This document shows positions 1-18,517 of a DNA stretch of 55,260 bases, in pieces. Within the stretch, counting starts at the first letter, position 1. Every line of letters begins with the position of its first letter. The notes beneath the pieces were generated by a model, which worked only from the letters and a program-made list of their open reading frames with translations, was not told the origin of the DNA and did not search any database. The translations under genes and the position numbers were made by a program. Origin of the DNA: Trichosphaerium sp. ATCC 40318 (Eukaryota > Protista > Tubulinea); contig JALMLS010000004.1 in assembly GCA_038496445.1 (NCBI GenBank), forward strand, positions 1 to 55,260, in the 5' to 3' direction.

Positions 1-206
1 CTCACTTGTAGTAAAAATCTTTTTGCTATTGTAGAATAAAGATCTGTCTCAAACGAGTTTTTCCAAAAGCGTTTGCTTGCTATTTTTCTGAAATCCAAGC
101 ATCGTTTTTTTTTGTGCATCTATCTCTTTTATTATTTGTAATTACAGCAAGAAAGCGCTTTGGTTTCTATTTTTTTTTTTTTACATCAAGTATATTTTTT
201 ACATCC

Positions 207-2638
207 TTAGAAGGGTTGGTTTGTTGGAAATTCTAATGGTGGTTGCGTGTGGTGCTGTGGTGCGCCAGTATTATATGCAGCTAGGTAGCTGTTAGTATGA
301 AGTAGAGAGCAAAACAAAATAACCTGGTGGTATGACAGAAGTCCTTATTGGTTGCTGGGTATTATAACCGTAGCCTTGAGTAGTCGGCACAGCGTTTGGA
401 GCCGGGACGGGCGATGCAAAAGGTGGATTGGATTGCTGTGTATTTGCGTATTATAACGGGATTCACTGGTGATGTGTGTTGAGTGGAGCGGGTTGAGCGT
501 ATACAGGAGTAGTCTTGGGGGTTGATAATGCTGTGTTGTGTGAGATGGTGGGCGCGATGGGCGCTGAGCTGGTTTTGCATATCTAGGGTATTGTTGTGAA
601 GGCTTGTGTGCACGTGCAACAGGTATATTGCTGTAATGTGTGTTTGAGTAACTTTGGTGTCCCGCTGAGTTAGCGTGAGGCAGTGGGTCGGAGTAAAATA
701 TGGATGGTTGCTGATAGGCGCTACATACTTTTGTGAGTAACCATAAAAAAAGCACTGCAAAGTCAACTTTTTCTTACTTTGTAGCATCAGGTGCTGATGG
801 AGCTCGTTTTGTGTAAGAGTCATCACGTACAATGCGTGTAGGGGCAAGTATGACTTTCCCTGCGGTTTGATACTACAACTTTGAGTTAGCTTTGTGTGTA
901 AAGGAAAAAAGTGTACCTGCTTGGTAGCGACGACACACGCTGCTTCTGCTGAGTGAAATGTAGTTCTATTGTCATGTCTTGCGGAATATATGATGACGGC
1001 TTTAAGGCACCCGCAAACACATTATCGATCTCTGGAACAGGAATAACAATACGGGAAGATTTCACAAAATTCGTGTGAAATGTGTATCTTTTGCTTAGTA
1101 TTAGTGAACTAACGGCATCATGTGACATACCTAAACAATGGAACAAGAGGGTACTTTGCTGCTGCCTTTATACCAACAATGGTTCCGTGCACTATTGTAA
1201 GTGAGTATCCAATATGAAAAAGCAATTACATACACCTGTTCAAAGTTTTACCAAAATGTACAGAGTTTTTTTGCGATGTGAAAGAACTTTAGTTGCACTC
1301 CTCCTCTTACAAATGTCTGGACAAATGTTATGGTTAAACTATATTAGTACCATAGAGGTACCTTTATCTCCATATCAATAATGCGATCATCCTTCCAGAC
1401 ACTAGTGCCAACAACTTCCTTTATTTGTGCCCTGGGAGCTGCCAGTTCCATTACTTTTATAACTGGCGTGCATGCGCCACCTGTAAGTAGCTACGTTAGA
1501 AAAACATTGTTCACACGTGTAAAACAACTTATGGGTTGTAACAATTACCTGTGTACGACTTTTTAAACGAAACTGTACCGCCGCCCCTTCCACAAGTGGT
1601 ACAGGTTTGATGATAACTTTGTCCAAAAACAGTTTTTTGGGCGAGTCAAATCCATGTTAGTACGCATTACTTTTTCGAAGTAGTGTACTGTCCTGCGGTG
1701 ACATATTACTTTCTGCTGTTTGAACGCTATTGGTACTTACCTGACCTGGCTTGGAAGTACCACATTGAGTCCGTTTTTGCTTCTGTGTTCATTAAAAAAT
1801 TTGATTGCTTCATCCGCTGTTTTGCATTTTCCGGAGCGAAGCAAGTACGAACTAACGTTAAATATCTTAGTAGGCGCGTGACTTATAGTATACATACCAT
1901 ACTATAGTTCCGGTTCTTGACCGACCTGCAAGGCAATGGACAGCCGCTACATTGCGTGCATCACTCTTGATATATGCGTCCATATCGCTTACAATGGTCT
2001 TTAGTAACGTCAGTGATGGCGCCCTAGTTTGAACATTCAATGAATGGCACGTGAACATTGAAACTTTTTTTTTTTTCTTATTTTGATGCAGTTTAAATGT
2101 CGTCTACACGCACGAGTGGTCTGGAAATCCATATTCTTTGACTTGATTGTGAAAAGCGTGGTAATCGTACTTGTCGGTACTCACATTGTATACCTGTTAA
2201 ACGTGTACGAAATGAGTGGGTGCTAATTTGGGGGTGGTTGACGATACTGACGTACTTTGTAATGCCCAGGATGCTTTGAATTCAGAAAATTTGCAACCGA
2301 CTTTACATTGTTTCGCCAATTCTGCAATTTTGTATTTAATTATAATTTGTGCCGTTTAGAAATTGCGTTGTGTACGCTCATAGCGTAAAATTGGCGAGTA
2401 AGCTTTTACCTGTGATACACCTTCCCCAGGAATACCCATTGCGATCACATTATCTGTGATGTACCTATTAGGCTACTTTTAGAGGCTGCATGTATTTTCG
2501 TAAGCGATTTACGTTAGATCCAGGTCAAAGCCATCAACTTTATGCCTGTATTTATCACCAGATACTTGAGATGCAATTAGATGTACAAATACGTTAAAGT
2601 ACTTTGTGCTAACCTAATTCGCGCATTTTTTTCTTCAT
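207..2638 (-). CDS. PTEN-family phosphatase (phosphatase + C2 + P/Q/N-rich tail), left copy with apparent indels
   Basis: Mirror of 9702..12140; the 3' exon is frameshifted relative to the right copy. Confidence 0.75.
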
Positions 2639-2777
2639 TGTGAGGAAAGGTAGGCTGTGTTTAATTACCAGGTCGTGTGATTGTGTTTACAAAAAGAAAC
2701 AATAAAAAGCCTTACGCCAACGCAAGTCAATGCATTTAAAAAAAAAAGTGTGTAACAGTTTTTCTCCCTTATATGCA

Positions 2778-4320
2778 ATGCAACACTCTATAACCTCTTT
2801 TTTTGGTGCCAAGGCCAACGTCAACCCGCATTTGAGCAAATTACCTGGAACGTCACCGCGCAGGCGAAAAAATAACCGCTCGTTTACAAATCAAAGTAAA
2901 ACGTTGAGCAGTTCGCCTATAAGTAGAATTGGTAATTTGAAACGCAAACGAGCCACAGAAACAAAAAAAGGGCGCAGTGTGTTTGATTTTAATGAAACAA
3001 GCCCCGTGAAGAAGCGCAAAGTAGTTAAAAAGAAGAAGGTGCTCAATACGCTACGATTTTATACTCTCCAACCGAAAGGGTACTGACGCACAAGTTAGAC
3101 ATCTAACCCAGAGAAAGACCAATACCTAATCGATTTCGGGCAAAATGGTACGTTTGTAAAGTTTCTGTAGCGCAATAAATCACCAACACGTTTTTTCGCG
3201 TAGGCTTAAAGGAGGAGACATGCCCAGTGTGTAATATGACGTACTGCCCCTCCAATCCAAAAGATGTTCGCATACACAACAAATTACATGACAAAATAAC
3301 TGGACAGACGCCAATACGATTGATTTGCCAATTACGTGCAGTTTTTATAAACTTATTTTGCAGTACAAGCTTTGTTTTTTTTTGAATTTCGCGCCACCGT
3401 CCTTTCTGACTTGTACAAGGCTTGGAAATCGATGACTGTAGTGCGTCGATGGCAAACGACACCAAAATCTTATGTGATTTCGATCGACACGCAATCGGCA
3501 GAGTATCAGCGCACAAAGGTGCAAGAAATACGGTAATGCTCTCACTCGCCTTGTTAAAATCATTCTGACAGGCTGATTATTATAGTAAAATGGTGATGCT
3601 ATGCTAAAATTCTCACACGACGTTACGCGTGTGCCCAATTGTGAGAAGGTGATGAACGGTTGTAGTGGTTTACTTCTTGTTGACGTTGCTGTTAGACGTT
3701 TGTTTATATAGAGGGGAAGAAAGTTCTTGGCTGTGTTGTGGCTGAACGCATTAAAAAGGCATTTCCTTTATTGACGGATTCAAAAAAAAGTTCACCTGGT
3801 GATGTGCGTTAAAACTAGATGGGTTTTTAATGTTGCTGATACTTCTAGGCCGATACACTTGATGACGCAACTGTATCAGAGAATAGTGATAAACCTGAGG
3901 AAAAAGAAAATCAACCACCCAGTTCAGGTAGGTGCAATAAATTGTTGTGTAATGCTGATATGATAGTCCTAGAAAATGTTTCTGGCTCCATAAGGTACAA
4001 TGCTCAAGATTCTAGATTAGCTATGATTGGTATATCACGTGTTTGGGTATTTTCTAAATCTAGGCGTCAAGGCATAGCCACCAAGTTGCTTAATGTTGCA
4101 AGGTAATATTGTTGTAAAAAACCTAACATAACGTTATTTGTTTCAGGTCACAATTTGTTTATGGTAATGTTGTAGACAAAACAAAGATTGCATTTTCCCA
4201 ACCTACAGCTGAAGGCTTTGCATTTGGAAAAAAGTATTAGTGTTAATTAATGTGGATTGTCATTAATTTTTGTGTAGGTATTTTGATCAAAAAAGCTTTT
4301 TAGTGTATCCTTTGGATTAA
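2778..4320 (+). CDS. ECO1: ECO1/ESCO cohesin acetyltransferase, left copy (garbled near 3310-3345)
   Basis: Spliced translation gives an N-terminal PIP-like MQHSITSFF, QYLIDFGQ, a zinc finger CPVCNMTYCPSNPKDVRIHNKLH, GNAT motifs GISRVWVFSKSRRQGIATKLL and IAFSQPTAEG, and ends FLVYPLD*. Confidence 0.8.
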
Positions 4321-4644
4321 TGAAGGTTATTTCAAATTGTAAAATAAATATAAAGTAAAAGCATGTATGTACTGTTAATAATTGGTAAACAATATTATTT
4401 GTATGTAGGTTTTAAATGTACAATGTAATTGGTTTATAGTTTAATCAACAGTTTGAAACTGTCACATACATCTTTGAATTGTTTTACAAAAGTAAAATCT
4501 TGTAAAGCTCTAAAACAACTATTTAATTCTAAAACTAAGCAGTAGTGTTTGGTTACAGTAAATAGTTATAGGTACAAACAATATACAAATAGATAATAGT
4601 ATTTGAAGCTTGTAAAGGCCAACATTGCATAAGCAAAAATGTAT

Positions 4645-4883
4645 AACCCTAACCCTAATTTTGCTTAGGGTTGTAAACCTAACCCTAGCCCTAAATCAAA
4701 TTTGCAACTACCAGATAAAACCCTAGCCCTAACCCTAAACCCTAACCCTAAACCTAAACCCTAAACCCTAACCCTAACCCCCTAAAAAAACTCCTACCCC
4801 TAATTTACAAACCTCTAATGTTCGTGAAACCCTAGTATCACTGAATTAGGGTTTTTGACACTAGGTTAGGGTTTAAACCCTAA
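4645..4883 (+). repeat. Telomere-like tract, (CCCTAA/CCCTAAA)n with variant and inverted units
   Basis: A run of ccctaa/ccctaaa at 4721-4803, plus head-to-head units at 4651-4672, 4827-4854 and 4866-4883. Confidence 0.9.
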
Positions 4884-6642
4884 TTTTCGCTGATTCTCAT
4901 TCAGTGAACCAAATACCAAAAAAGGGCAAGTCTTGCTCATTAAGCGAAAATAAACACTGAATATTAAAAAACTTAGTACTTTTACAAAAAACACCTCATA
5001 ACTCTACACCAAGGTAATATATATTGCTCATAATTTATATACAACAAATCAAGGCATATAACATACGATACATTAAGCGCTACATGTATGATGATATACA
5101 TGGCGAGTATCAGGCAACCCTAATGGATAAAACTATAAAATGACAAAAAATATTTATTTGTTATCACTACTAAATGCCATGATCATTTAGGACTAAATCA
5201 TTTTATTTCTATGTAGCTACAATATAATACTAATAAAAATATTTTGTATGATAACATAGATGATATTAAAACTGTTATTTACATCATTTTTTAATACAAA
5301 TAGCATTTTTGTATGTTGACATTGAGAAAAAACCTTTAATTTAGCACTAAGATGATATATTCTTTTATAAAAGGTATGTTATATATCTAATAATCAAATA
5401 TAAAAACAATTATATTATGTTATTTTTAACATAAGTGGCCTTGATAGACAGTATGATCCAAAAAAAAAATAAAAAACTATAATTCTCAAAAAACAAGCTG
5501 TGTCGCTGCATTAAAAACATCTATGTATTCATGTTCACAAGTCATCGACCACCATGCTTGAGATCATGTATGTGCAATAGATTGCAAATATATGATATAA
5601 GTCCAACAAAATAGATGAATTGCATAAACACACACCAAAAAAAATTATTGGCACTAAAAAAGCTCTATGCCAATATAATTTTACACCCATGAAAACATAT
5701 CCAAATGGATAGAAATAGCCATATAACAAAGATATATGGCATCAAGAGGTATCATGGAGGCAAAGCTGTTTTTTGCAAAATGCATTTTTTTGGTTTTTTA
5801 CCATAAAGTATGATTGTAGGTAGCTTCATCAAGATCATCTATGTATATAAATAAATTACAAGATGATGCCATGATGTTTGTTAATAGGAAAATGAAGAAT
5901 CGCACACCATAGATAATAATGGGGGGCTTGTGCATCAACGAACAATGTCATCATTTTTGCCAAAAGGGCACAAACTCAAAATGCTTCTAAGCCTTCAAAT
6001 CCAACCATCATTTTTTGTTTTTATATAGGCTTAAATAAATAAAGTATATAAGATGGCATAACAATTTAAAGTAAATATTCATAGGGGGTATGGTGAACGA
6101 CCACTAAAAAATGAAAAAATGGAGGAAATTTCTACATTTTCCTTAATTTGGATCGCATATATGCCACCCCACCAAATAACTGTATACCTCTTATTATTGC
6201 TATGCAAGTACTACATATCCTCAGTCGCCATCGATCCATCATGTTGTTGGCCGTGACCATTTCGAAAACATATGCTATAAAAGGTAAAACATATAAATTA
6301 ATTAATAACTATTCATGATGGACAGGTATGACAAAATAGATGAATGCATTGGATTTCTTGAGCAAAATGGCATACATGTATATGCATAAGTGAATTATAG
6401 GTGATCATGTAACTGCAGCCTCCAAGCAAAGATGTGCTCAATTTTTTGCTAAAAAAATCCCATTGGAAAAATCAAAAAAAATCCAAAAATCAAAGAATGG
6501 CTCACCAAATCGACGTATACTGCTATAAAATCCTACAAACCACCAGCAATCGGGTAATTTATGCCAATGTATAAGGTACAAAAAACGAAATTGGCTTAAG
6601 CGATATGATAAGGTATGCGGTAATGCATGGTTCAAATTAAAT

Positions 6643-6659
6643 CCCTAACCCTAACCCTA
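6643..6659 (+). repeat. Short interstitial (CCCTAA)3 telomeric motif
   Basis: ccctaaccctaacccta. Confidence 0.75.
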
Positions 6660-6819
6660 CTCATATGCAATTCCAAAAGTAATACTCTAAGAATTCTATG
6701 GGTAATACTTACGGAATTTCATATAAATTCAATGGAATGAAGGAAGAGTTTTTTCCGTCTATTTTTCCCATAGGAAAACAGGGTGGATTACTTAAAAATT
6801 CCCATTTCTATTTTACTAC

Positions 6820-7420
6820 TGAATATCTTGGATTTCCTCATTTTTTCACATGAAGCGCTTTGCTTCAAAATGCATTCCACTGTGAGGTTTGTATGTACCG
6901 CTTCGCTAAATAATGCATTCCACTTTTAAATATTGCAATTCTTATTTCACTACAATACTTTGGATTTCCTCATTTTTTCGTATAAAGCGCTTTGCTTCAA
7001 AATGCATTCCACTTTGAGGTTTATACATGTACCGTTTTGCTAAATAATGCATTCCACTTTAGGTATTATATTCTTTTTTCATTATAATATCTTGGATTTT
7101 TTCATTTTTTTCACATGAAGTGCTTTGCTTCAGAATGCATTCCACTGTAAGCACCGCATATGTGCCGCTTCGCTGAATAATGCATCTGATATTAGGTGTC
7201 GCATGCATACCGCTTCGCTACAGTATCTTAGATTCTTTTAATTTTTTTTTCACATTAGGTTTTGTAATATGGCGCTTCGCTTCAGAATGCATTCCACCAT
7301 AATCTCTGCATGCCTACCGCTTTGCTACATAATGCATTCCACTTTAGGTCCCGCATGCATGCCGCTTTGCTACAAATTGTTGGATTCTATGAGTTTTTTG
7401 CTTTTTTGCTGCTTTGCTAC
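6820..7420 (+). repeat. Degenerate ~132-bp tandem repeat (~4 copies), probably subtelomeric
   Basis: The anchor ttggattt recurs at 6828, 6960 and 7092, then more loosely at 7228 and 7380. cgcttYgct...aatgcattccac occurs twice per unit. Confidence 0.85.
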
Positions 7421-7564
7421 AGAATGTTGTCATTGTGACCCTATAATATATCGCTTTGCGATATATTTCTACACAGTGCTTCGCACTGTTACATAGTACT
7501 ATATGTATAAGTATCGGCAACGTATGTTGCCTACATGCTGTTTAGCAACAGCATAGATCATAGT

Positions 7565-7704
7565 CCCTAACCCTAATTGGCTTCTAGGGTTTAACCCTAA
7601 TCGTTGTTTAAATCTGTTAGGGCTAGGGTTTTATCTGGTAGTTGCAAATTTGATTTAGGGCTAGGGTTAGGTTTACAACCCTAAGCAAAATTAGGGTTAG
7701 GGTT
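7565..7704. repeat. Interstitial telomeric motifs in both orientations
   Basis: ccctaaccctaa at 7565; ttagggctaggg at 7617 and ~7655; ttagggttagggtt at 7691-7704. Confidence 0.85.
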
Positions 7705-8030
7705 ATACATTTTTGCTTATGCAATGTTGGCCTTTACAAGCTTCAAATACTATTATCTATTTGTATATTGTTTGTACCTATAACTATTTACTGTAACCAA
7801 ACACTACTGCTTAGTTTTAGAATTAAATAGTTGTTTTAGAGCTTTACAAGATTTTACTTTTGTAAAACAATTCAAAGATGTATGTGACAGTTTCAAACTG
7901 TTGATTAAACTATAAACCAATAATACATTGTACATTTAAAACCTACATACAAATAATATTGTTTACCAATTATTAACAGTACATACATGCTTTTACTTTA
8001 TATTTATTTTACAATTTGAAATAACCTTCA

Positions 8031-9562
8031 TTAATCCAAAGGATACACTAAAAAGCTTTTTTGATCAAAATACCTACACAAAATTAATGACAATCCACAT
8101 TAATTAACACTAATACTTTTTTCCAAATGCAAAGCCTTCAGCTGTAGGTTGGGAAAATGCAATCTTTGTTTTGTCTACAACATTACCATAAACAAATTGT
8201 GACCTGAAACAAATAACGTTATGTTAGGTTTTTTACAACAATATTACCTTGCAACATTAAGCAACTTGGTGGCTATGCCTTGACGCCTAGATTTAGAAAA
8301 TACCCAAACACGTGATATACCAATCATAGCTAATCTAGAATCTTGAGCATTGTACCTTATGGAGCCAGAAACATTTTCTAGGACTATCATATCAGCATTA
8401 CACAACAATTTATTGCACCTACCTGAACTGGGTGGTTGATTTTCTTTTTCCTCAGGTTTATCACTATTCTCTGATACAGTTGCGTCATCAAGTGTATCGG
8501 CCTAGAAGTATCAGCAACATTAAAAACCCATCTAGTTTAACGCACATCACCAGGTGAACTTTTTTTTGAATCCGTCAATAAAGGAAATGCCTTTTTAATG
8601 CGTTCAGCCACAACACAGCCAAGAACTTTCTTCCCCTCTATATAAACAAACGTCTAACAGCAACGTCAACAAGAAGTAAACCACTACAACCGTTCATCAC
8701 CTTCTCACAATTGGGCACACGCGTAACGTCGTGTGAGAATTTTAGCATAGCATCAACCATTTTACTATAATAATCAGCCTGTCAGAATGATTTTAACAAG
8801 GCGAGTGAGAGCATTACCGTATTTCTTGCACCTTTGTGCGCTGATACTCTGCCGATTGCGTGTCGATCGAAATCACATAAGATTTTGGTGTCGTTTGCCA
8901 TCGACGCACTACAGTCATCGATTTCCAAGCCTTGTACAAGTCAGAAAGGACGGTGGCGCGAAATTCAAAAAAAAACAAAGCTTGTACTGCAAAATAAGTT
9001 TATAAAAACGCACTGCAATCGTAATTGGCGTCTGTCCAGTTATTTTGTCATGTAATTTGTTGTGTATGCGAACATCTTTTGGATTGGAGGGGCAGTACGT
9101 CATATTACACACTGGGCATGTCTCCTCCTTTAAGCCTACGCGAAAAAACGTGTTGGTGATTTATTGCGCTACAGAAACTTTACAAACGTACCATTTTGCC
9201 CGAAATCGATTAGGTATTGGTCTTTCTCTGGGTTAGATGTCTAACTTGTGCGTCAGTACCCCTTTCGGTTGGAGAGTATAAAATCGTAGCGTATTGAGCA
9301 CCTTCTTCTTTTTAACTACTTTGCGCTTCTTCACGGGGCTTGTTTCATTAAAATCAAACACACTGCGCCCTTTTTTTGTTTCTGTGGCTCGTTTGCGTTT
9401 CAAATTACCAATTCTACTTATAGGCGAACTGCTCAACGTTTTACTTTGATTTGTAAACGAGCGGTTATTTTTTCGCCTGCGCGGTGACGTTCCAGGTAAT
9501 TTGCTCAAATGCGGGTTGACGTTGGCCTTGGCACCAAAAAAAGAGGTTATAGAGTGTTGCAT
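8031..9562 (-). CDS. ECO1: ECO1/ESCO cohesin acetyltransferase
   Basis: Same motifs as the left copy (PIP-like box, C2H2 finger, GNAT fold), with GT-AG introns. Confidence 0.88.
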
Positions 9563-9701
9563 TGCATATAAGGGAGAAAAACTGTTACACACTTTTTTTT
9601 TTAAATGCATTGACTTGCGTTGGCGTAAGGCTTTTTATTGTTTCTTTTTGTAAACACAATCACACGACCTGGTAATTAAACACAGCCTACCTTTCCTCAC
9701 A
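9563..9701. promoter_or_regulatory. Putative bidirectional promoter between ECO1 and the PTEN-like gene (mirror at 2639..2777)
   Basis: The divergent start codons are only 139 bp apart. Confidence 0.5.
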
Positions 9702-12140
9702 ATGAAGAAAAAAATGCGCGAATTAGGTTAGCACAAAGTACTTTAACGTATTTGTACATCTAATTGCATCTCAAGTATCTGGTGATAAATACAGGCATAA
9801 AGTTGATGGCTTTGACCTGGATCTAACGTAAATCGCTTACGAAAATACATGCAGCCTCTAAAAGTAGCCTAATAGGTACATCACAGATAATGTGATCGCA
9901 ATGGGTATTCCTGGGGAAGGTGTATCACAGGTAAAAGCTTACTCGCCAATTTTACGCTATGAGCGTACACAACGCAATTTCTAAACGGCACAAATTATAA
10001 TTAAATACAAAATTGCAGAATTGGCGAAACAATGTAAAGTCGGTTGCAAATTTTCTGAATTCAAAGCATCCTGGGCATTACAAAGTACGTCAGTATCGTC
10101 AACCACCCCCAAATTAGCACCCACTCATTTCGTACACGTTTAACAGGTATACAATGTGAGTACCGACAAGTACGATTACCACGCTTTTCACAATCAAGTC
10201 AAAGAATATGGATTTCCAGACCACTCGTGCGTGTAGACGACATTTAAACTGCATCAAAATAAGAAAAAAAAAAAAAGTTTCAATGTTCACGTGCCATTCA
10301 TTGAATGTTCAAACTAGGGCGCCATCACTGACGTTACTAAAGACCATTGTAAGCGATATGGACGCATATATCAAGAGTGATGCACGCAATGTAGCGGCTG
10401 TCCATTGCCTTGCAGGTCGGTCAAGAACCGGAACTATAGTATGGTATGTATACTATAAGTCACGCGCCTACTAAGATATTTAACGTTAGTTCGTACTTGC
10501 TTCGCTCCGGAAAATGCAAAACAGCGGATGAAGCAATCAAATTTTTTAATGAACACAGAAGCAAAAACGGACTCAATGTGGTACTTCCAAGCCAGGTCAG
10601 GTAAGTACCAATAGCGTTCAAACAGCAGAAAGTAATATGTCACCGCAGGACAGTACACTACTTCGAAAAAGTAATGCGTACTAACATGGATTTGACTCGC
10701 CCCAAAAAACTGTTTTTGGACAAAGTTATCATCAAACCTGTACCACTTGTGGAAGGGGGCGGCGGTACAGTTTCGTTTAAAAAGTCGTACACAGGTAATT
10801 GTTACAACCCATAAGTTGTTTTACACGTGTGAACAATGTTTTTCTAACGTAGCTACTTACAGGTGGCGCATGCACGCCAGTTATAAAAGTAATGGAACTG
10901 GCAGCTCCCAGGGCACAAATAAAGGAAGTTGTTGGCACTAGTGTCTGGAAGGATGATCGCATTATTGATATGGAGATAAAGGTACCTCTATGGTACTAAT
11001 ATAGTTTAACCATAACATTTGTCCAGACATTTGTAAGAGGAGGAGTGCAACTAAAGTTCTTTCACATCGCAAAAAACTCTGTACATTTTGGTAAAACTTT
11101 GAACAGGTGTATGTAATTGCTTTTTCATATTGGATACTCACTTACAATAGTGCACGGAACCATTGTTGGTATAAAGGCAGCAGCAAAGTACCCTCTTGTT
11201 CCATTGTTTAGGTATGTCACATGATGCCGTTAGTTCACTAATACTAAGCAAAAGATACACATTTCACACGAATTTTGTGAAATCTTCCCGTATTGTTATT
11301 CCTGTTCCAGAGATCGATAATGTGTTTGCGGGTGCCTTAAAGCCGTCATCATATATTCCGCAAGACATGACAATAGAACTACATTTCACTCAGCAGAAGC
11401 AGCGTGTGTCGTCGCTACCAAGCAGGTACACTTTTTTCCTTACACACAAAGCTAACTCAAAGTTGTAGTATCAAACCGCAGGGAAAGTCATACTTGCCCC
11501 CTACACGCATTGTACGTGATGACTCTTACACAAAACGAGCTCCATCAGCACCTGATGCTACAAAGTAAGAAAAAGTTGACTTTGCAGTGCTTTTTTTATG
11601 GTTACTCACAAAAAGTATGTAGCGCCTATCAGCAACCATCCATATTTTACTCCGACCCACTGCCTCACGCTAACTCAGCGGGACACCAAAGTTACTCAAA
11701 CACACATTACAGCAATATACCTGTTGCACGTGCACACAAGCCTTCACAACAATACCCTAGATATGCAAAACCAGCTCAGCGCCCATCGCGCCCACCATCT
11801 CACACAACACAGCATTATCAACCCCCAAGATCTACTCCTGTATACGCTCAACCCGCTCCACTCAACACACCTCATCCAGTGAATCCCCGTTATAATACAC
11901 AAATACACAGCAATCCCAATCCACCTTTTGCATCGCCCGTCCCGGCTCCAAACGCTGTGCCGACTACTCAAGGCTACGGTTATAATACCCAGCAACCAAT
12001 AAGGACTTCTGTCATACCACCAGGTTATTTTGTTTTGCTCTCTACTTCATACTAACAGCTACCTAGCTGCATATAATACTGGCGCACCACAGCACCACAC
12101 GCAACCACCATTAGAATTTCCAACAAACCAACCCTTCTAA
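9702..12140 (+). CDS. PTEN-family phosphatase
   Basis: Spliced: [39 protein letters not shown]...YGFPDHS...VHCLAGRSRTG...LPSQVR, then a C2-like region and a P/Q/N/Y-rich tail ending NQPF*. Confidence 0.88.
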
Positions 12141-12412
12141 GGATGTAAAAAATATACTTGATGTAAAAAAAAAAATAGAAACTAAAGCGCTTTCTTGCTG
12201 TAATTACAAATAATAAAAGAGATAGATGCACAAAAAAAAAACGATGCTTGGATTTCAGAAAAAATAGCAAGCAAACGCTTTTTGGAAAAACTCGTTTGAG
12301 ACAGATCCTTTATTCTACAATAGCAAAAATATTTTTACTACAAGTGAGTCTTCATTGAATATCGTGGCTTTGATTTGAGGTACCGAAAATCGATAAAATA
12401 AAAAAAAAGAAC

Positions 12413-14137
12413 CTACAGGCTGGCTGTAATTTCCTCAACCTTTTGCTTAGCATCACCGAGAAGCATTTTTGTGTTTTCACTGACAAAAGTTGGGTTTGTT
12501 ACACCAGCGTGGCCAGCTCCATCGACTGAGCGCTTGATTACAACACACTAATACAGACGTGAGTTCAAGCTGTTTTGTTTAAACAACAACAAAAAAGAAA
12601 GCATTGATTCAATACAGAACAAACCACGTACTTGTGCAGCCTCCCAAACAGGCAATACATTAGTGAGAAAGTTAGGTGCTTGGGAATCGGTAGCACCGCG
12701 GTTGATAATATCATTAGCACCTGATAAAACGTATAAGTAACCCATCAAAAAAAAAGTAGTTAAAACTGGCGTGAGAGATGTTGCTATTCAGACAAGATGA
12801 TATCGGCAATGAAATTACGTTCAGAAGCTTAGAATAATTTTTTGACATCATTTGAAAAAAGAACAAAAAGAAAAAAGTAACCCAACAACTTACCAACAGC
12901 AATAACTAAATCAACCTGGGCGAAATTTGGGTATTGATCAAAGTAAGTTGCATCTTCAATTTGATGGATCATTGAAAGAGGTAAGTTCGCCATGGAGAAT
13001 CCTTGTACAAAAGAACGACCATATAAACGGCCAGCGTCTGGGTGAACAACAATTTTGACGTCCTTGCCTAATAATAGTGACGTGAGCTATAGATGCTCGA
13101 ATAAAAAAAAAAGTAAAGCACTAAAACCGTACCTGAGGCGGCAAGTTTCTTAACCATAGTGGTGATTGCCTCAAATGCATCAGCATTTTGTACGCCAGCG
13201 CCTACAACAACAGAAACACTACGTAACCAATTAGATAATTGAAAAAGCCAGTCTAAAACATTGCAAGGGCCTAATAACGTACGTGTTGGCACTCTTGGCT
13301 GCTGAAGCGACACCAGCGGCTTCAGTATGTACAGGTTCGCTAGTAAGAGCTGCGCCTGTGCTCCAAGGCTTGTATGATGCGGCAATAGCTGGAATACCGG
13401 CTGGGAAGGAAGAAATACCCATAAACACCATAGCTCCAATGAACACGGGTGTGAAGTCCATCACTACATTGTACATTAGAAACTAAAACTGGACAAGGGA
13501 GAATGGGAGGGAAAAAAAATCAAAAACAAAAAAAAAGTTTTCAGGACTTGGAGTTAATATTTGAGTATTATTTTTCTTTCTTTAACGCCAAGCGAACGCC
13601 CACAAACAGCTCGAAGTTCAGTCTGTCAACTGGAATAGCTCGCAAAAAAACCGTTCAACCCTTTTTTTTTTTTTGGTTCACGTACTAACGAAAGAGAGGT
13701 GACCCATGTAGGCTGTGTTAAGCATAGCAAAGCCAATCCACCATACAGATCTGTTGTTGAGGTACTTTTGGCGCTGTTGGAGGAGTGGGAGTTTGTCGAA
13801 CATTGATGTTTCAGGTAGAATTGGTTCTTCAACAACTACAGCGGCGTCTTGCTTCGCGGCGGCAGGAGAAGCGTAGCTGCGGGCTACAATGCGTGCTACA
13901 GCTAGAAGACGAGTGAATAACGAGCACAATCACTAGTTTCAAAGTTTCATTTTTTTTCAGTGTTGGTTTCAGCGTGTAACGGGCTGGGTTAGAATTTTTG
14001 AAGCTACTGGCAACCGCTGGAGGAGAAATAACATACCTTTGTTGTACTGTGTGCGCAGAGTTTTCTACACATAAAAAAGTTAGCGCGAGTGATAATTTAC
14101 CAAGCCCAGTGTTAAAAACAACGCACCTTCGATGCAT
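12413..14137 (-). CDS. Truncated, divergent NAD(P) transhydrogenase protein: presequence-like N-terminus, 2-3 hydrophobic segments and the NADP(H)-binding domain III only (~320 aa)
   Basis: Spliced C-terminus: VSVVVGAG...VVHPDAGRLYG...VIAVGANDIIN...VLPVWEAAQCVVIKRSVDGAGHAGVTNPTFVSENTKMLLGDAK, which follows PntB/NNT domain III motif by motif. The 5' exons are uncertain; the best model needs a 1-nt homopolymer correction near 14061-14064. Confidence 0.85.
12785..12855 (-). ncRNA. Candidate intronic box C/D snoRNA
   Basis: A ~170-nt intron contains ATGATGT (C-like), an internal CTGA (D') and a terminal CTGA (D) within ~70 nt. Confidence 0.35.
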
Positions 14138-14576
14138 TTTTCGATACGAGAAATGAAACACTGCGAGTGCTTTGTTTCGCTTTTGTTGGTGCGACCGTAA
14201 TACGGCAAACTAAATATTGCTTTAGGAGCGACTTTTAAGGCCAATGGAGAGATCAAGGTGGATGCCTTCAATTTTTTACCAGCACTCCAAATTTATAAAA
14301 TTTGGGCTGCATGGCGCTTGTTTATTATTGTAGCGGTAAAACACACCCAAACATTAAACAAAATAACATACCGTAGTTTCCTGCTCTAGACAAAGCCATA
14401 GTCTCTAGTTTAGTCGCTTTTTGTTGAGTTTGGCAACGCGGTGGTCAACAAGGCAAAAAAAAAATTACGGTCAAAAAAAAAAAACCATTCATCAATTATT
14501 TTTTGTTGGAAACAAGGCCTTTTTTAACCGTTGAAATTTACGTTGCGAGCGCATAAACGAGATTCAGAAGTTACAG

Positions 14577-17188
<2,612 letters not shown>

Positions 17189-17387
17189 CAAAACAAAAAA
17201 CGTTTACTTTTATGGCTTCTTGCACAGCTTGATTTTTATTGGCAAGGCAAACAAATGCTCAAATACTGAGGCGTTTTCTACCTATTTAATATTGTAAAAC
17301 ATTTAAAAATAGACCAGGATTCTTTCAAATAATTATGTCATTATGAAGCGCCGTTTGTTTCTTAAATCCTCTTTATACAGCGCCTCC

Positions 17388-17981
17388 TTAGCACACGCCT
17401 AGCCTTCTCATGGTACCAATGATAAGTCTCCTACCTGTCTTCCGTAGGTACTCCACATCTAACATGTCTTTGAATGGCACTGAATATGGAGCAGCGCATG
17501 GCATTCCATATCCACCAATAATATCAGATGGGTCACGCCCTAGCACAGCTTCTAGAAATTGGGCGTCTGACTTTTGCCACTTTTTGGTTTGGAGGTACTT
17601 GGTGGGAGGGCTTATTGACTTCTCGCTCATCAACTTACTTAACCAATCTCGTGTCTCCCAAGTGCACGGCTCTTCTCCCAGCTTCTCTCGCCTGCTGTAA
17701 TATCTCTTGTCGCCCCGCTCTGAAAATACTTCTACTAGATCGCTTTGGGCGCCGTTTGGTTGAAGAAGTACACAAACGTCTATATTATCTTCTAGTCTGT
17801 ACCAATGCTTCGAGCACAATAAGCTCTTGGCTTTGTCACTATAAAATACGCATAGTGGAGCGAAAAATGAGCACGTTAACGCAAAATTGCGGTACGTTTT
17901 CGCATTACCTTCGTGCATTACGTGATCTAGTACAATACACCAAGAATCAGCGTCTAGCAAGTCTTCTGGGTCGTTAGCCAT
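17388..17981 (-). CDS. Intronless hypothetical protein (197 aa) with a weakly F-box-like N-terminus
   Basis: Clean ATG-to-stop ORF with protein-like composition; LLDADSWCIVLDHV...YRNFALTCSFF. Confidence 0.65.
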   Translation of the reverse strand: MANDPEDLLDADSWCIVLDHVMHEGNAKTYRNFALTCSFFAPLCVFYSDKAKSLLCSKHWYRLEDNIDVCVLLQPNGAQSDLVEVFSERGDKRYYSRREKLGEEPCTWETRDWLSKLMSEKSISPPTKYLQTKKWQKSDAQFLEAVLGRDPSDIIGGYGMPCAAPYSVPFKDMLDVEYLRKTGRRLIIGTMRRLGVC

Positions 17982-18517
17982 GGTACGTTATTCTTTTTGA
18001 CAAAACGACACCTAGTTGGGTAGATGTGTCCAATTGACGCTAGTATTGTCACGTGGTATAGTTTATGTGGTTTGTGGTCGTTGAAGGTATGATGACTGCA
18101 TACAGCAAGGGTTCACTGTTCCCTTTTGAACTTCACTTACTTTTTTGGCTTAAGCAAGAATTAGTTATTGTGGTCACCACATTGCTATTGAGTCACTGAC
18201 CAGTCAAAGGCTTTGACTTTACCGCCAATGCTCCGCTTGGAAATTTAGTATTTATGGTTGTTGCAAACATTATCCCTATTTGTGAGACGCGTGATATAAC
18301 GGTATTGCAAATACATCCAGTTGTAATAAAAATCGACACTGTCGATTAAGGCTAAGCCTTGCTCCAAGTGCATGTAACCAAATTTGCTTTAAAACAGTTC
18401 TAGAAATTCAGTTTAACAGTTGTTTATTACAATTACAAGCACCTTAGCCAATTTTCTTTAATAAAGTTTGTATAGTCAGTCTCATACTCCAAAATCTTCT
18501 GGAATTATACTGTCAAA

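Follow-up and report, generated by a model that had tools for sequence, protein, structure and literature searches.

A transhydrogenase domain III gene without domain I or proton channel in the amoeba Trichosphaerium sp. ATCC 40318, possibly encoding a membrane-tethered NADP(H)-binding protein

In the known transhydrogenases, the domains are spread over varied polypeptides and in varied orders, as in the two-subunit PntA/PntB type, the three-subunit R. rubrum type and the eukaryotic alpha-beta and beta-alpha forms (PMC7614955). A survey of the eukaryotic enzymes reports alpha-beta and beta-alpha architectures only, both of them in Amoebozoa, and does not mention truncated forms (PMC7614955). 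In the split and permuted enzymes described, domain III (dIII) is always fused to the membrane domain of the beta half (transmembrane helices TM6-14). Closest to a dIII without proton channel are the recombinant isolated domains of the E. coli, R. rubrum, bovine and human enzymes, which are artificial soluble fragments and still dock on domain I. Isolated dIII binds nicotinamide adenine dinucleotide phosphate (NADP(H)) with an apparent dissociation constant (Kd) below nM, orders of magnitude tighter than the holoenzyme, for a reason that was called unexplained (PMC5742237). Here we describe a natural dIII gene, encoded on the minus strand of a 55,260-nt stretch of Trichosphaerium sp. ATCC 40318 DNA (the window, to which all coordinates refer). 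In contrast to PntB and NNT, it has neither the nine preceding membrane helices nor the His91 channel (TM9 with His91, TM13, TM14), and no domain I partner is present in the polypeptide or at the locus. In contrast to the recombinant fragments, it appears to bring its own anchor, a short hydrophobic region unrelated in sequence to the beta-half membrane domain, and its docking and lid segments are altered. A literature search of limited scope gave no description of a natural dIII-only protein.

The nature of the domain follows from the comparison of the spliced protein with E. coli PntB, taken from NC_000913. Its C-terminus is 36% identical to PntB 300-462 over 170 residues (blastp, E 1e-26), and the alignment finishes on the same last residue, the stop of the gene thus coinciding with the C-terminal end of PntB. 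A profile of 80 bacterial PntB genes from GTDB genomes, which at 65-94% identity to E. coli PntB is too narrow to place the domain among bacterial or eukaryotic clades and to tell a host paralogue from a transfer, matches residues 131-306 with 86 bits (E 2e-28) and aligns nothing upstream of them. In an exon-by-exon scan, the Pfam family PNTB was reached by the last exon only (38.6 bits at a cut-off of 31.7, 8.5e-10, profile positions 416-455 of 456). With E values of 2e-7 to 5e-5, the same exon also hits all dIII structures of the PDB (E. coli, bovine, human, Thermus, R. rubrum, ovine). For the exon carrying HPDAGR no match was obtained in Pfam, PDB or Atlas when it was searched alone, and it aligns only inside the whole spliced protein. 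Compared with the dIII of PntB and NNT (NNT ~880-1086; C-terminal part of PF02233), homology extends across the whole domain up to the same C-terminal end, with HPxAGR, GAND, KRS, NPxF and GDAK in common. By its sequence, the C-terminal stretch of 176 residues is a complete transhydrogenase domain III, which bears out the assignment of the spliced C-terminus to the PntB/NNT dIII in an earlier note on this DNA.

Conservation within the domain was assessed against 74 gamma-proteobacterial, beta-proteobacterial and actinobacterial PntB sequences. Invariant dIII columns are kept in 38 of 74 cases (51%), variable columns in 24 of 89 (27%; Fisher p 0.002). Invariant positions are thus kept twice as often as variable ones, pointing towards evolution under a dIII-type constraint. 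In E. coli numbering, the kept residues comprise G314, G316, H345-P-x-A-G-R350, G389-A-N-D392, N395, K424-R425-(S426), G430, G433, N436-P-x-F439 and G449-D-A-K452; the corresponding motifs of the spliced protein include H173-P-D-A-G-R178, G217-A-N-D220, K251-R252-S253 and G276-D-A-K279. Lost are Y315 (Ala), V319 (Asn), the PGHMNVLLAE helix P352-E361, T393 (Ile), P396 and Y431 (His). With the changes P402S, I406N, G408L, M409T and P410N nearly the whole of loop D is replaced, and loop E contains one inserted residue (KRSVDGAGHAG). All of the motifs that the earlier note had listed as retained, HPxAGR (HPDAGR), GANDxxN (GANDIIN), KRS, NPxF (NPTF) and GDAK, are present in the alignment, where its substitutions GYG to GAG, GRLPG to GRLYG and GYAG to GHAG and the remodelled loop D are likewise seen.

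The distribution of kept and lost residues can be related to the published structures. Contacts to NADP were described for P346, A348, G349, R425 and A451 (PMC13635403), for the Ala and Asn of GAND (PMC5026163) and for the KRS motif (PMC9529548), and judged from the alignment all of them are kept in the spliced protein. Loop D (P402-L412) and loop E (K424-F439) both take part in NADP(H) coordination, and a hydrogen bond between R350 and Y315 is specific to the detached, occluded state (PMC9529548). Of the Gly-X-Gly-X-X-Ala/Val fingerprint, located at residues 932-937 of the human enzyme (PMC5026163), the glycines are present as G142 and G144; Asn occupies the sixth position (V319 in E. coli), and Ala stands at X2 in place of Tyr. 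The overall pattern reads as an adenosine-2'-phosphate end that is kept and a nicotinamide and docking end that is remodelled. In the canonical enzyme, Tyr315 and Tyr431 flank the nicotinamide at the hydride-transfer site, a role that for Tyr431 is reported from work on R. rubrum. Because loop D and these tyrosines are remodelled, the usual docking to domain I is argued against.

The gene model consists of six minus-strand exons with GT..AG borders throughout (Table 1), which form a single open frame of ~307 codons up to the TAG at 12415-12413. Downstream of exon 3, the first of the six, the chosen acceptors are the sole ones that preserve the open frame. With 47% GC in the exons compared to 31-40% in the introns, and a third-position GC content (GC3) of 0.40 close to the 0.37 of the adjoining expressed malic enzyme gene, the dIII gene looks native. 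We regard it on these grounds as a real nuclear gene that is intact and intron-rich. Despite the divergence to 36% identity, its ~307 codons are open, its splice sites are intact and the ligand-binding invariants are preferentially kept; as read from these features, it has evolved under selection as a protein.

Neither domain I nor the proton channel was found in the surroundings of the gene. In a tblastn search of all 55 kb with E. coli PntA and PntB, the dIII exons were the sole matches, and for domain I (PntA) the best E value within the window was 0.8. On the 5' side the malic enzyme gene follows directly, so that there is no space for domains I and II at the locus, as the earlier note had argued. 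Its homology runs on the plus strand from ~14700 to 17164, with the N-terminus near 14700-14800 and the homology to P0125 extending to 17164, and the gene is confirmed by a spliced transcript of the same species (JGI sample 3300016894) that matches 15588-18136 at 99.5-100%. Lacking domain I and a proton channel, the protein cannot be a transhydrogenase alone. The earlier claim that it can by itself neither pump protons nor transhydrogenate is in accordance with the PntB profile and the PntA search.

Towards the N-terminus, hydropathy (Kyte-Doolittle, 19-residue mean) indicates one strong segment at residues ~85-115, reaching 1.81, and a weaker one at residues 63-88. Of the two to three hydrophobic segments counted earlier, these two could be recovered and a third is not seen in the hydropathy. 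The hydrophobic exon gave no match in Pfam. Its translation reads FLMYNVVMDFTPVFIGAMVFMGISSFPAGIPAIAASYKPW... and leads into the tether of ~15 residues to dIII. A local alignment of the anchor with E. coli PntB 205-270 (TM13-14) is no better than shuffles (p 0.25-0.42), and the profile score is -3.4. A derivation of the anchor from TM13-14 was considered due to a resemblance by eye of AMLNTAYMG to SMLNSYSG and was rejected, the likeness not being significant. The likeness of LFVGFLMYNVVMDFTP to a membrane motif of PntA, suggested in the earlier note, did not hold: tblastn with PntA gives nothing at the locus, and the LFVG part is present only if the optional mini-exon, whose GTTCGC donor is weak, is used. 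Over their first 27 residues, both candidate N-termini have four Arg/Lys and are free of Asp/Glu; each also has an R-x-Y-(A/S) motif (R-S-Y-A-S). Such a basic, acid-free stretch would be compatible with a mitochondrial presequence.

The 5' part of the gene allows several models. An exhaustive enumeration gave 48,056 frame-compatible exon chains, and therefore the 5' exons, including the ATG at 14137, are not decidable by sequence alone. The open frame of exon 3 begins at 13929 and its translation reads ...(A)VARIVARSYASPAAAKQDAAVVVEEPILPETSMFDKLPLLQQRQKYLNNRSVWWIGFAMLNTAYMGHLSF; the acceptor may lie at 13902/13901 or 13896/13895, either of which takes one base from an upstream exon. Candidate exon A, 28 nt in length, has the right phase and a good donor and implies an intron of 470 nt compared to 41-207 nt elsewhere at the locus. 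Model B is frame-compatible with introns of 62 and 146 nt, and both of its donor hexamers are also used in the spliced malic enzyme gene. A third possible start lies within exon 3, where the frame has its first internal ATG (MFDKLP). Two options exist for the junction of exons 3 and 4: GTTAGT leads directly to 13482 (207-nt intron), or GTACGT at 13685 leads there via a mini-exon of 26 or 32 nt at 13629. Read from the sequence, the mini-exon fits the frame if exon 3 takes this GTACGT donor, and by its use the two hydrophobic segments would be set 10-12 residues (IDRLNFELF..) further apart. In the malic enzyme gene (15588-17050) the introns span 41-108 nt and have loose donors (GTATGT, GTATGA, GTACAC, GTAAGT, GTGCGT, GTACAA, GTGCGC); such very short introns and loose donors make exon prediction of this kind unreliable in this genome. 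An Rfam scan of 12610-14650 gave no match.

Table 1. Coding features of the dIII gene and its 5' neighbour, in window coordinates.
Feature	Position	Strand	Remarks
Last coding exon	12413..12547	-	CVVIKRS...GDAK...ITASL + TAG; loop E with KRS, GHAG, NPTF, GDAK; acceptor TATTAG
GANDIIN exon with remodelled loop D (RGATDSQAPNFLTNVLPVWEAAQ)	12632..12720	-	Sites TATCAG / GTACGT; aligns to E. coli 389-418
HPDAGRLYG exon with replaced PGHMNVLLAE helix	12894..13067	-	Sites TATTAG / GTAAGT; most divergent dIII portion
Exon of first dIII strand and glycine turn (VSVVVGAGVQNADAF...)	13133..13218	-	Sites ACGTAG / GTACGG; frame closes with ACGTAG acceptor only
Exon 4, strongly hydrophobic segment (DFTPVFIGAMVFMGISSFPAGIPAIAA) and ~15-residue tether to dIII	13283..13482	-	Hydropathy
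Optional mini-exon (model of the earlier note)	13598..13629	-	Donor GTTCGC; 26-nt variant 13604-13629, donor GTGGGC
Exon 3	13690..13901	-	(A)VARIVARSYASPAAAKQD..., acidic spacer, MFDKLP..., weaker hydrophobic segment WWIGFAMLNTAYMGHLSF
Candidate 5' exons B (model of the earlier note)	14048..14137	-	14137-14127 MHRR GTGCGT; 14064-14048 KLCAHT GTACAA; would yield MHRRKLCAHTVARIVARSYAS
Candidate first coding exon A	14372..14399	-	ATG GCT TTG TCT AGA GCA GGA AAC TAC G, donor GTATGT (MALSRAGNY); would yield MALSRAGNYAVARIVARSYAS
Malic enzyme gene	14640..17164	+	Head-to-head with dIII gene; bounds locus

For the expression of the gene, the share of sampled 12150-14650 words was determined in public runs, several of which have assemblies of transcriptome size (11-18 Mb). 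Four runs, their assemblies being of this size or larger, contained a share of 0.34-0.36 and five runs 0.26-0.28. If only exons were present, a share of 0.29 would be expected for the coding sequence alone and of 0.35-0.37 with 150-200 nt of untranslated region (UTR). The observed values fit an exon-only content, by which expression of the dIII gene is indirectly suggested.

Taken as a protein with a function of its own, the product would comprise ~305-320 residues, in which a basic, acid-free presequence-like stretch, one to three hydrophobic helices and a short linker precede a strongly diverged but complete dIII. The kept HPxAGR, GAND, KRS and GDAK motifs would hold the ADP-2'-phosphate part of NADP(H). 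Since isolated dIII binds NADP(H) with a Kd below nM, a membrane-tethered module that holds the nucleotide is the most likely reading; by analogy with isolated dIII, very tight and slowly exchanging binding would be expected (PMC5742237). Its function might then be that of a sensor, a regulator or an accessory subunit rather than that of a transhydrogenase. That it is a neofunctionalised, membrane-tethered NADP(H)-binding protein with a new role, possibly in mitochondria, is in our estimation about evenly balanced between right and wrong. More tentative, and rather doubtful in this specific form, is the proposal that the tethered dIII, no longer a transhydrogenase, senses the redox state by way of a firmly bound NADP(H) or contributes the nucleotide-binding site, as an accessory subunit, to another membrane complex of the mitochondria. 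That the protein binds NADP(H), inserts into a membrane, resides in mitochondria and fulfils such a physiological role is our inference. Of the stand-alone, membrane-anchored dIII claimed in the earlier note, the architecture stands, with dIII, a short anchor and neither domain I nor proton channel in 55 kb, whereas the roles proposed for it cannot be distinguished from each other. The observation of a dIII-only gene is confirmed, and its interpretation is partly supported.

Several points speak against such a tethered NADP(H)-binding protein. The sequence is compatible with several start codons, presequences and helix counts, and with the helix count varies the membrane side faced by dIII. 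Fingerprint positions are lost (Asn at the sixth position of GxGxxA/V, Ile for T393), so that from the sequence NADP(H) binding would not be guaranteed. The transcript set of the same species at JGI contains the malic enzyme neighbour, not the dIII gene. With exon-sized queries, no orthologue of the dIII protein was found among representative proteins, JGI contigs and the Atlas. The 57-residue HPDAGR exon retrieved three spurious repeat proteins only from 1.84 billion representative proteins, and in the JGI metagenome contigs nothing was found for this exon or for the hydrophobic one. In the Atlas there was no match for the HPDAGR exon, and the last exon led to generic PNTB fragments only; a search for homologous proteins with the last exon gave no short candidates. 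Exact look-ups of the genomic open reading frames (ORFs) found none on record, and E. coli PntB as query returned enterobacterial sequences only. Also, a contig of a relative with a malic enzyme 61% identical to the one described here has no dIII gene within 6 kb of it. Purifying selection in the present lineage is therefore a presumption. These blanks are, however, weak evidence, because the queries were exon-sized and the lineage is poorly sampled, the malic enzyme of this amoeba having no counterpart in the collection above 64% identity.

The same blanks, together with the missing transcript contig in the searchable collections, would be in accordance with a relic, left by the duplication or breakage of a transhydrogenase gene, that is silent or recently dead and has no present function. 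Its position next to a 12.3 kb palindrome with telomere-like repeats, in what would be a subtelomeric, rearranging region, and the loss of many family-invariant residues point in this direction. A decaying gene should however hardly combine a long divergence (36% identity to PntB) with an intact ~307-codon frame and intact splice sites, the conserved residues fall preferentially on ligand-binding invariant positions (p 0.002), and the word share in public runs fits an exon-only content. As the negative searches weigh little where even the malic enzyme of the nearest sampled relative is only 64% identical and a 57-residue exon was the sole query free of a length filter, we consider a relic unlikely.

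Less probable still is one piece of an unusually split transhydrogenase, which would assemble into an active enzyme with a domain I and proton-channel helices encoded elsewhere. A complete and membrane-tethered dIII could serve in this way. Against it, Tyr315 is replaced by Ala and Tyr431 by His, and P402, I406, G408, M409 and P410 of loop D are replaced as well, which affects segments that coordinate NADP(H) and participate in its occlusion (PMC9529548). The anchor is unlike TM13-14, the helices that contact dIII in the holoenzyme, the tether comprises ~15 residues compared to ~30 in E. coli, and the eukaryotic survey describes no split after TM12 (PMC7614955). An artefact of gene model or assembly, with further exons, another 5' end or a mis-join beside the palindrome making the short architecture unreal, appears very improbable to us. 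The many frame-compatible 5' ends and the two options at the junction of exons 3 and 4 would allow it, and the palindrome to the left may be an assembly fold-back. But the palindrome arms end near 12175-12348 and do not reach the dIII gene, the stop codon of which is the natural end of PntB. Upstream, at most ~500 bp are left before the malic enzyme gene, confirmed by an independent transcript (99.5-100%), and no further PntB or PntA pieces appear with tblastn in 55 kb.

Several features of the surrounding sequence were noted besides. The dIII gene and the malic enzyme gene are arranged head-to-head at a distance of ~240-500 bp (14137-14700) and may share a promoter; a co-regulation of these two NAD(P)-linked proteins is conceivable. 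On the far side of the malic enzyme gene, a 197-residue ORF (P0004, 17388-17981, minus strand, locus L001) is an orphan that forms a singleton cluster and has no Pfam match. It shares the JGI transcript contig with the convergent malic enzyme gene, by overlap of the transcripts at their 3' ends or by a merger in the assembly. The relative's contig mentioned above (L083, JGI 3300073660) is eukaryotic, metagenomic and 50 kb in length; homeodomain, CUX1/CASP and leishmanolysin-type genes adjoin its malic enzyme, and it may belong to a distant relative. To the left, positions 1-12348 form a near-perfect palindrome of 12.3 kb, the arms of which (~172-4733 and 7616-12175) are 99-100% complementary, around a non-palindromic centre of 2.9 kb. 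At 6809-7374 this centre contains a 132-nt unit in 2.8 and a 45-nt unit in 2.3 tandem copies, and the left arm has telomere-like repeats (AACCCT/AAACCCT, 4719-4781) at its inner edge. Owing to the palindrome, a region coding for Pro/Gln-rich sequence (…QQYPRYAKPAQRPSRPP…) is present twice, at 11400-12140 on the plus strand and mirrored at 345-847 on the minus strand. The copy at 11400-12140 is convergent with the dIII gene and ends 272 bp from the dIII stop, the dIII gene being the first unique gene outside the palindrome. Truncation of a beta-alpha-type gene by a chromosome-end rearrangement was considered and rejected, as the stop is at the natural end of PntB and the portion that is missing would lie at the opposite, 5' end.

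The three domains of transhydrogenase are regarded as one indivisible machine. If the dIII-only protein proves true, a dIII that became detached in nature would demonstrate an independent reuse of the module that occludes NADP(H), and it would provide a natural experiment on why isolated dIII binds NADP(H) so tightly. If the gene were only a relic, merely gene decay in a subtelomeric region would be documented. As a functional protein, it could point towards a so far unknown component of amoebozoan mitochondria that senses or holds NADPH and is possibly co-regulated with the adjoining malic enzyme gene.

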